From Guillardia theta CCMP2712 (taxonomy: Eukaryota; Protista; Cryptophyta): a DNA stretch of 42,478 nucleotides. The stretch is from the NCBI RefSeq assembly GCF_000315625.1, contig NW_005434611.1, positions 382,046-424,523 on the forward strand, written 5' to 3'. A model generated the notes under the pieces. It searched no databases, had not been told where the DNA came from, and worked only from the letters and a program-made list of their open reading frames with translations. This document shows, in pieces, positions 16,226 to 19,200 of the stretch. The translations under genes were made by a program, and so were the position numbers. The stretch's first letter is position 1; each line of letters begins with the position of its first letter.

Positions 16226-19200
16226 TTTTACTGGCAGAAGGTAAAAAGTGCCTCAAGCAAAACAAAGCAGGAACAAGCTAAACCTCCTGGCACACAGCGC
16301 ACAGCGAGAAGCTGCACTATCACACACAAAACACAAGCCCGAAAAGAACCAGCACTGCTGGCACCCGGCAGACGCGGCAGCGCCAGCCCAAGCGCGAAGC
16401 CTAAAATCCCTTACACGCGATACCCGGAGGCAGCCGACTGACCACTGTCAGTCGAGACGTCCGCTGCCGCCACAAAGCGGGCGGCCGCGGACGGAGAAAG
16501 GGCAGCCGCCGACAAGGAGCCGGCGTTGCCCGGGGGTCCGCCTGGGGCAGCGGACGGAGGGAGGCTGGACACATGAACACGGTACCGCTCGAGGTAGTCC
16601 TCCTCGCTAGCCTCCGAGTCAGCGGTAGCCAAGTCAGTGGTAGCCGCCCGTGACGGCGGCGACGCCGCGGCAATGCCCAAGGACCGGCGTGACCCGGCGA
16701 CCGATGCCGGGGAGGAAGCAGGCGAGCTCGGACCAGCAGCAAGCACCCCAGTGGTGTCGAGCTCTCCGGAGGCACCCGACGTCACAGTGAGGGACGGAGA
16801 CGCTTCGCCAGCTCCGCGCCGATCGTCGGGGCCACTCGAAGGGTTTCCCCCATCGGAGTCGGAGACCTCCGGCGAAGACTCCCCCTCGGGCGACTCGACA
16901 AAGTCCGAGGAGGAGCTGTCCTCTGGCTCGAGAAGTGCTTGCGCCCGCAAGGGCGTCATGCGCCTCGCACCAGACAAGAGCGCCTCCAGCGTCAGCTGCA
17001 TGGTGAGGCGCTGATAGGTGGCGGCGCGTTTGCGAGCCAAGACCTCAGCAGCAGGGCCGTCATCAGGCACGAAGTGCCGACCAAACGCCGCATCCTCAAG
17101 AGGCATCGAGCGCTGAGCAATGATGTCCGCCAAATACCAGATGAAGCGGAGGGTGTCAGGATGCAGGGTACCGTCCGTCGAGATGGCAAGAGGGATGAAC
17201 GCTCGAGGAGGAGTAGTCATGGCATATGCAGCGCGATGTTTGCGAATCTTCTCAGACGCTGCAACATATATAGGATTTACTGGCAGAAGATAAAAAGTGC
17301 CTCAAGCAAAACAAAGCAGGAACAAGCTGAACCGGCAGGTACACAGTCCACAGCGAGAAGCTGCACAATCACACACAAAACACAAGCCCGAAAAGAGATG
17401 GCAAGAGGGATGAACGCTCGAGGAGGAGTAGTCATAGCATATGCAGCGCGATGTTTGCGAATCTTCTCAGACGCTGCAACATGGAGGGCGTCGAGGTTGA
17501 CCTCCCCCCACTTGGTCAGGTCGGCAGAGCTACCAATGTAAGGGTGGACCAACGTCACGTCCGCCATCAAGCCCTCGTACTGCTCGGACCCTCGATCGCG
17601 GATTCCAGGGATGTGGATATCGCCCTTCATCTTGCGGCCATGAGGATGGGAGGGTACCTGCCGTCGAGAACGAGGATCCCCCACTGTATCGATGACGCTC
17701 TGAAGACCAGCTTCGTTCAGCATCGACCGAATCGTACGAGTAAGGTTGTCATGCGCCGTGGGAAGCTTGGAGGATCGGCGTTTGCAGGTCTGGAGATGAT
17801 GTGCAGCAACGGAGGGGTCGAGCTCGCGCTGACATCCATCACATTCCGTCGGACACTGGCAGATCGGCATGCCATGGAGATAGCAGTCGAGCATCTGAGC
17901 ATAGCGGTGCGGGAAGGCCTTGAGGGGGTAGTAGCTCGAGACTCGCATCGGAGAGTGGCTCAGGTCTCGCTCAGGAAAATGAGCGAAGATGGTAGACTGC
18001 AAGACCCTATCCTGCGACTTGAGCGAGTGTGTCCTGCGGCTGTGCAAGGTGAGGATATCACGCTGCTGATCGGTCAGCGCAGCGCGAGCATGCACATGTC
18101 GAGGGAAGACGCGCATTACAAGAGGAGTCACATTTCGCTGCGCAGGGGGAGGAATGAAGTGCTCATGAGACGAGTCGACGAGAGCGCGCAAACCAGGGAT
18201 GTGTACCACAGATGCCGGGGGGCGGCCTGCGTCATCAGGCACAGCAGCCGGGGCAGGTGGGATCGCCGCGCCATCTGCAGCCGGTGCAGGAGCCTTGACA
18301 CGACGGTAGAGGATCGCTCCAGCATTATGAACGAAGTCGTGCGCCTCAACGAAGAAGGTCGCCAGAGGATGCTTCTGGGCACGGAGAGATCTCGAGCAGT
18401 GAACGTCCAGGCTATGAGGAGAGGGCAAGGTCCGGGACATGGGCTGGTCAGAGTACCAAGCGAGGAAGCGAGCGATAGCCGTATAGTAAACAGCGGGGTG
18501 TAGACCCTCAGAGGGCGTGAACTCGTCCCCTCCCCGACTATGCGGAAGCTCCCGCTTGAACCTCGCAAACTCGAGCAGGTCGGGATGCGCGGCGAGGTAC
18601 TGCGAGGAAGGCCAGCGGTGGTATTTCTCTAGCGCCAGGTGGACAGAGAGGTCAAAGCGACGAATCTGTGATTGGACCCGCGGGAGAAACGGAGAAGACC
18701 CCTGGAGGAAGAAGCGCAGCTTCTGGAGATGGCTCGCCCTCACCAGCGTCTTGAACATGAAGCCATGCTGGACGAGCCCGAGCTTCGAGAGCTCTTCGTT
18801 GAGGGTAGAAACCTTCGCTCGGAGCTGACTAGCATGAAATCCATCCGTGCCGATAGGCAGGCCGCCAAGTGTAATCCCGCCAGTGACGACCTCGAAGTGA
18901 AGAAGTTGAGTCTTGAGACGGCGCTTAAGGCTCTTCTTCAGCTGCGAGAGATCAGGGTGTTGATGCCAGGAGGGGATGTAAACTTTCGACTCGCGAGGTT
19001 GAATCTCTAGCTTCAGATCAGCTAACATGTACTTCTTCATAGCGGACGTAGCTGCAACGGCATCCTCGAGTGGACCGACAAGCACGACGTTGTCAGCATA
19101 GGCCAAGACTCGAACAGAGGGAAAAAGCTCTGCGATATGGAGGAGCAGGGGGTGGATACTGTGGCAGAAAAATACGCTGGAGGGGACATCGCCCTGACAG

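Follow-up and report, generated by a model that had tools for sequence, protein, structure and literature searches.

An 88-bp direct repeat inside a nest of self-inserting retrotransposon fragments in Guillardia theta is very probably not a target-site duplication

In the cryptophyte Guillardia theta CCMP2712, a stretch of 42,478 nucleotides of contig C63 (NW_005434611.1; hereafter the window, numbered from its first letter) contains a short retrotransposon 3' end of 127 nt, consisting of the terminal part of the element plus one extra base, which lies in the orientation of its host between two 88-bp direct repeats that differ at a single position (17221 G versus 17436 A). This arrangement raises the question of whether the repeat was made by the insertion itself, as a target-site duplication (TSD) of unusual length, or was brought together from different copies of the same element. 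An earlier note on this DNA had proposed the former, with a bottom-strand nick at one end of the repeat (site A) and a distant top-strand nick at the other (site B), both in the nuclease gene of the element, and had read the outcome as a self-limiting mechanism in which resident nucleases are knocked out. What that note had described in the letters themselves was found again: the repeats with their one mismatch around the 127-nt piece, the sense 3' tips at site A (ending at 22717 and 22761), the 15-nt deletion at 24855, the antisense insert near site B (a 27-nt tip) and the protein context of the two sites, LHVAASEK and ISTDG. The features concerned are collected in Table 1.

Table 1. Features of the repeat and of the surrounding nest (window coordinates; model positions refer to the 5,905-nt element model; TSD, target-site duplication).
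Feature	Position	Strand	Description
Whole nest	14605..28623	(.)	14 kb, about 59 fragments of one element family, both orientations
Downstream element segment	16402..17267	(-)	model 4799-5662: nuclease end and ORF end; begins at site A
Downstream arm, 88-bp repeat	17180..17267	(-)	first 88 nt (model 4799-4886) of C-allele segment
5'-truncated element 3' tip	17268..17394	(-)	model 5780-5905 plus one extra T
Upstream arm, 88-bp repeat	17395..17482	(-)	last 88 nt (model 4799-4886) of T-allele element segment
Upstream element segment	17395..19347	(-)	model 2934-4886: RT core, CCHC knuckle, first part of nuclease
Long sense copy	19346..22464	(+)	model 1501-4615: CAG tract (poly-Gln), RT with YADN, CCHC knuckle
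3' tip joined to site A at model 4793 (CCCTCCATG)	22565..22717	(+)	
32-nt 3' tip plus GCAG at site A	22730..22765	(+)	4-bp TSD CATG, model 4798-4801
27-nt antisense 3' tip at model 4897	22864..22890	(-)	6-bp TSD ACGGTA, model 4892-4897
15-nt deletion across site A, third copy	24855..24856	(-)	model 4788-4802, 1-nt microhomology

The genome (87,145,349 bases in 669 contigs) was searched, and a model of the element was assembled from its copies. In this model, stitched as it is, a single open frame of at least 1635 aa encodes a poly-Gln tract, a reverse transcriptase (RT; Pfam RVT_1, E 1.9e-6), a CCHC knuckle and a C-terminal PD-(D/E)xK nuclease. Within the knuckle and the nuclease, residues C52, C55, H67, C71, H82, D126, D146, K178 and K181 are invariant or nearly so across 20 aligned relatives, and the nuclease motif resembles the REL pattern quoted in PMC12857005, except that GD replaces PD. 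The codons of site A include the conserved nuclease Lys, and those of site B fall within a conserved F-x-P-L-x-x-S-T-x-G motif. A search of PDB sequences returned no match. Instead of the YxDD motif expected at the RT catalytic site, YADN was found in all 24 copies read (window 21026-21037, + strand), and since YADN, FADN or FLDN is also present in four distant relatives, this feature is a trait of the lineage rather than a sign of decay. Together with the occurrence of 100%-identical copies on separate contigs, the uniformity of YADN suggests an active RT lineage that may do without the second catalytic Asp. The element ends in GTAAATCCTATA, without poly(A), and bears the signature of TPRT, namely a fixed 3' end, variable 5' truncation and no terminal repeats; 243 exact 3' ends are present genome-wide, and 265 tips of at least 16 nt (median 95 nt) terminate at model 5898-5905. 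It is thus a single-ORF non-LTR retrotransposon with RT, CCHC knuckle and PD-(D/E)xK nuclease, of the R2 group with a restriction-like endonuclease, and, judged by motif resemblance, it would belong to the CRE/Cnl1 type (CRE clade: CRE1/2, SLACS, CZAR, Cnl1 and MoTeR). The CAG tract at 19346-19874, within the ORF, encodes a long poly-Gln/Pro linker that separates the RT from a conserved N-terminal block, and its length differs among copies. Subfamilies are distinguished by alternative 3' ends, in which AAATCC continues with ATTG, ATTA or ACTAT.

The nest in the window is the sole such cluster on contig C63 among the matches listed, and the same pattern holds elsewhere: on each scaffold, the matches listed all fall within one interval of at most about 21 kb, with the proviso that these are scaffolds and not finished chromosomes. 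By analogy with Zepp, the nests are candidate centromeres. A literature search found no paper on this element family of G. theta or on cryptophyte centromeres. Inside the nest, the long sense copy terminates at an assembly gap (22465-22564). The region 16402-23715 has a mirror-like appearance, in which two downstream halves, each starting at site A, face outwards and are linked by two head-to-head insertions that meet at 19346/19347; as the halves represent different haplotypes (10 differences in 767 nt), the structure is not a fold-back. Just beyond the left edge of the nest, at 13878-14248, lies a 43-bp tandem array of 8.6 copies.

The single mismatch between the arms of the 88-bp repeat is informative about their origin. 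It falls on model 4845, the most polymorphic position in the stretch, where the A at 17436 represents the T allele, carried by 46 copies genome-wide (34%), and the G at 17221 the C allele, carried by 91 (66%). Random pairs of copies differ on average by 1.1 nt across these 88 nt, and the two arms differ by one. The segment containing the downstream arm is identical over 864 of 864 nt to a copy on contig C75 (locus L010), from which the upstream arm departs at three positions in 605 nt (4435, 4464 and 4845), each of them a polymorphic site; the upstream segment, which abuts the adjoining copy head to head, has a haplotype unlike that of the downstream arm. Whereas the arms of a TSD copy one molecule, these arms carry two alleles and match different haplotypes. 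Because the mismatch is a polymorphism found in a third of the copies and the arms follow different haplotypes, the repeat is an overlap of two independent copies, which the earlier note had itself named as a finding that would speak against its proposal. Two copies are involved, and the repeat is very probably not a TSD. The enclosed tip has a haplotype that occurs with both alleles and can be assigned to neither arm. Its 5' joint, from model 4886 to the tip, occurs nowhere else in the genome and shows microhomology of no more than 2 nt; an internally deleted subfamily carrying this joint was considered and rejected on account of that uniqueness. Its 3' joint, from the tip to site A, recurs on contig C19, there next to an assembly gap.

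The integration habits of the element were mapped in the window and at 90 loci, together 263 kb from 49 contigs, with inserts shorter than 16 nt excluded from the counts; since the sample was chosen around tips and RT 5' ends, the null expectation based on coverage is imperfect. Element sequence adjoins 212 of the 265 tips, which yields 201 distinct 3' junctions (117 in the sense orientation and 84, or 42%, in the antisense one) and supports the earlier note's view that new insertions enter existing copies of the element in either orientation. At the 163 junctions with both flanks readable, clean TSDs of 1-10 bp, mostly 4-8 bp, were found in 48 cases and clean TSDs of 11-20 bp in none, small deletions accompany 14, and the flanks come from unrelated positions of the same strand at 63 and from opposite strands at 38, so that unmatched flanks are the majority outcome at nested junctions. 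Insertion thus bears a TPRT signature, takes older copies of the element as targets on both strands, and leaves TSDs of 1-10 bp and mostly short 5'-truncated products. A 7-nt insert at 24904-24911 also has a TSD, of 7 bp; its letters, CCTATAC, are those at the very end of the element with one base added, and at this size it falls below the counting threshold. Apparent overlaps of the flanks form a continuum (39, 50, 51, 80, 88, 89, 94, 98, 109 and 127 bp, up to 4309 bp), and overlaps of 21-150 bp number 10, compared with 6.1 when flanks are shuffled. As a repeat, the 88-bp case is within chance expectation for these nests and is one member of this class of long overlaps. Among the seven long overlaps with comparable arms, six have arms that differ, and all 13 differences lie at polymorphic sites. 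Long repeats within such nests are usually overlaps of different copies, which calls for caution in their interpretation.

The joints themselves have a recognizable character. Across the 90 loci (L001-L090), almost all 3' joints bear 1-12 extra bases, 65% of which are C or T, and several tips meet tail to tail, with 6-17 extra bases between them. C and T make up 63% of target positions +1 to +5 against a background of 51%, an excess that may be inflated by the way boundaries are called. The extra bases match the flank of another tip in 19 of 59 cases, compared with 8 in shuffles, and these matches can be explained by low-complexity tails such as TCCTCC without necessarily implying read-through. 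A scrambled composite of 244 nt (a tip, antisense pieces and a further tip) is present at 100% identity on two contigs (C75:301304-301542, locus L010, and C12:882219-882474, locus L057), 5'-truncated on C12, and this shared identity indicates that joined pieces travel as units. Pieces of the nests move between chromosomes by read-through retrotransposition or conversion.

Insertion points are not uniform along the element. Pairs of junctions at most 2 nt apart number 27 in the sense orientation against 6.9 expected, and 12 in the antisense orientation against 2.7, in agreement with the clustering that the earlier note had anticipated. Its further claim that site A (model 4799; spot 4793-4802), in the nuclease coding region, is preferred for sense insertions also holds, with 8 exact sense junctions genome-wide, bearing varied linkers, against about 1.2 expected (P = 2e-4, or about 0.03 once corrected for some 150 windows); at least two further junctions at this site escape the exact pattern used. 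A second sense warm spot at 4898-4904 (window 17162-17168, - strand) holds 7 exact junctions genome-wide; it lies 12-18 nt beyond the B end of the repeat, receives mostly sense insertions, coincides with the antisense junctions at 4897 and adjoins a GGTACC palindrome. These two spots (A and 4897-4904) are the strongest sites seen, each occupied in about 5-7% of copies. The B end of the repeat (model 4886) fared differently from what had been claimed for it as an antisense hot spot: no antisense junction is found at 4886 genome-wide, and the two found genome-wide at 4897 (three in the sample), where the antisense tip of the window sits 11 nt past the end of the repeat, are not above chance (about 1.1 expected, P = 0.29). 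Where both flanks of insertions at site A are readable, TSDs are of 4 bp (the 32-nt tip in the window) and about 3 bp (contig C93), and the antisense insert near B has one of 6 bp; these lengths place the nick partners a few bases away and not 88 bp away, contrary to the paired-nick model. Further recurrent sites are present for sense insertions (3659, 4398, 4625, 4730-4737, 4784, 5048-5051, 5273-5278 and 5639) and for antisense insertions (5315-5318 and 5462-5468). Among the 201 junctions, which are spread along the element rather than confined to one defined target sequence, no strong target motif was found, and insertion sites show no periodicity at 8-14 or 80-260 nt. The element has no single target site and uses many weakly preferred positions.

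Against this background, a true 88-bp TSD, for which the bottom strand was nicked at A and the top strand far away at B, and in which position 4845 of one arm later changed through a C-to-T mutation or through gene conversion, is very unlikely and largely refuted. Its geometry fits exactly, with flanks in register and in the same orientation, one end of the repeat is a real warm spot, and long staggers are known in elements with a restriction-like endonuclease (RLE), as in R9 of bdelloid rotifers, with 126 bp (PMC6895275). Moreover, haplotypes in the family are mosaic with little linkage, so that the T/C difference could in principle reflect gene conversion after a true duplication, and a single T-allele copy on contig C33 matches both arms across short stretches; both observations count against a two-copy origin. 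However, the sole mismatch lies on the most polymorphic site, where a new mutation after duplication is estimated here to have a chance of about 0.003-0.01, compared with about 0.25 for two independent copies yielding the observed arm pattern. Clean TSDs never exceed 10 bp, the other insertions at A left much shorter ones, antisense junctions are absent at 4886, and sense/antisense pairs 80-89 nt apart are not significantly enriched (23 versus 16.4 expected, sd 4.4); pairs 90-99 nt apart number 26 versus 16.3 (sd 4.5), in one of nine bins tested. An artefact of assembly, in which the assembler merged reads of two near-identical copies, located on different chromosomes, at the tip or next to it and so produced the repeat, is also unlikely, with only a slight probability. 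The assembly is a draft with a gap inside this very nest, copies are about 99% identical, none of the (short) contigs listed from four public runs was shown to span 17394/17395, and the joint from tip to A recurs beside a gap on C19. Yet assemblers join on long identity, whereas the joint from 4886 to the tip has almost none and resembles other 5' joints, and the arms on C19 and C63 differ at 6 of 862 nt, which shows that one locus was not assembled twice and disfavours a single source for the identical joints.

Separate from the origin of the repeat is the proposal that the element has been selected to target its own nuclease coding sequence and thereby to inactivate resident copies. In the nuclease region (4650-4905), 27 of the 83 local junctions were counted where 17.6 were expected (P = 0.011), and the catalytic Lys lies between the two strongest warm spots, but the excess is owed to those two spots, and insertions also recur at sites in the RT, the linker and the C-terminal tail. 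These 27 junctions amount to 13% of the 201 nested ones, leaving 87% outside the region, and a dedicated self-limiting knockout is therefore unsupported; the knockout that the earlier note had proposed is not specific. Any insertion into the ORF kills a single-ORF copy, 148 of the 201 junctions lie upstream of the stop codon, nearly all within that ORF, and most targets are truncated fragments that were already dead. Self-disruption is a side effect of nesting, nothing shows an aim at the nuclease, and selection for such a design is most improbable. A further reading, which is doubtful, holds that the nuclease weakly but truly prefers two positions about 100 nt apart that flank its own catalytic Lys codon, and that read-through RNAs from copies inserted there would reinforce the preference by pairing. 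Self-nesting, together with the candidate centromeres piled up once per chromosome, would then be partly written in the sequence of the element, and joint use of the two positions would rarely give long duplications.

The origin that best accommodates these observations, and the one considered highly probable, is that the 88-bp repeat arose when a 127-nt cDNA of a self-nesting element with a short stagger was primed at A in a C-haplotype copy and joined to another copy or RNA of the T haplotype. The cDNA would have been primed at site A, and its 5' end would then have been connected to position 4886 of the different molecule, a joining step deduced from the product. Since the point of entry into the second molecule lay 88 nt downstream of A, the stretch in between became present twice. 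The connection could have been made by the RT jumping from one template to another or by a repair event that used a non-allelic copy, or, in a variant of this route, the tip and the downstream arm may have arrived as one composite cDNA. The preference for certain sites probably reflects local pairing of the C/U-rich 3' end of the RNA with the nicked strand, combined with a weak preference of the nuclease.

Several known systems offer points of comparison. Cnl1, a CRE-clade non-LTR element of Cryptococcus, prefers its own copies and builds nested arrays of 5'-truncated pieces (PMC9942834), with TSDs that are absent or of 1-12 bp, insert sizes between 25 bp and the complete element, and GC-rich targets (10.1101/2021.08.11.455996). 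The G. theta element likewise combines an RT with a restriction-like endonuclease and nests in itself, and the share of its tips that adjoin element sequence (212 of 265) and its clean TSDs of 1-10 bp correspond to Cnl1-like behaviour. In contrast, Cnl1 nests are subtelomeric and in tandem orientation, whereas those of G. theta occur one per scaffold with 42% of junctions antisense; the G. theta element also differs in its YADN motif, and no N-terminal C2H2 zinc finger was seen in it, the 5' 750 nt of the model resting on two or three decayed copies. Zepp-like elements are described as L1-clade, APE-type LINEs. In Coccomyxa subellipsoidea, Zepp forms nested LINE clusters, one per chromosome, that have been proposed as centromeres (PMC3446292). 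The element described here resembles Zepp in forming one nested cluster per scaffold and is unlike it in its C-terminal restriction-like nuclease and its cryptophyte host. Among RLE elements, R8 has a stagger of 9 bp and R4 one of 13 bp, and the RTs of RLE elements jump between templates (PMC6895275). The G. theta element shares the domain order and catalytic residues of R2, R4 and R8 but lacks a single target, and its strongest site received about 3-4% of the sampled sense insertions. R9 inserts specifically into rDNA and leaves a long TSD of fixed length, whereas the G. theta element uses many sites with TSDs of 1-10 bp; recurrence of a long TSD is absent, the 88-bp repeat being a single case with arms from two copies. 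By these analogies, the element appears to work like Cnl1 and to be placed like Zepp. The proposal of paired nicks 88 bp apart by which resident nucleases are disabled does not hold for it. It does provide a measured integration profile of a self-nesting RLE element in a cryptophyte: insertion on both strands, a stagger of 4-8 bp, C/T-rich extra bases, flanks that mostly do not match, and warm spots that are reproducible. Its two warm spots could serve directly as substrates in deciding whether sequence or chromatin directs self-targeting, a question that bears on the candidate centromeres.

Two minor observations concern the occurrence of the element in other data sets. Several aquatic and lake metagenomes contain 62-68% of its sampled words, a proportion equal to that in culture runs, and the signal comes either from close relatives or from a spike-in of the G. 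theta strain. In run X23, the sole stack of RNA reads lies at 16935-17144 of the window and comprises 66 short reads in total, almost all from one strand, which are possibly small RNAs.
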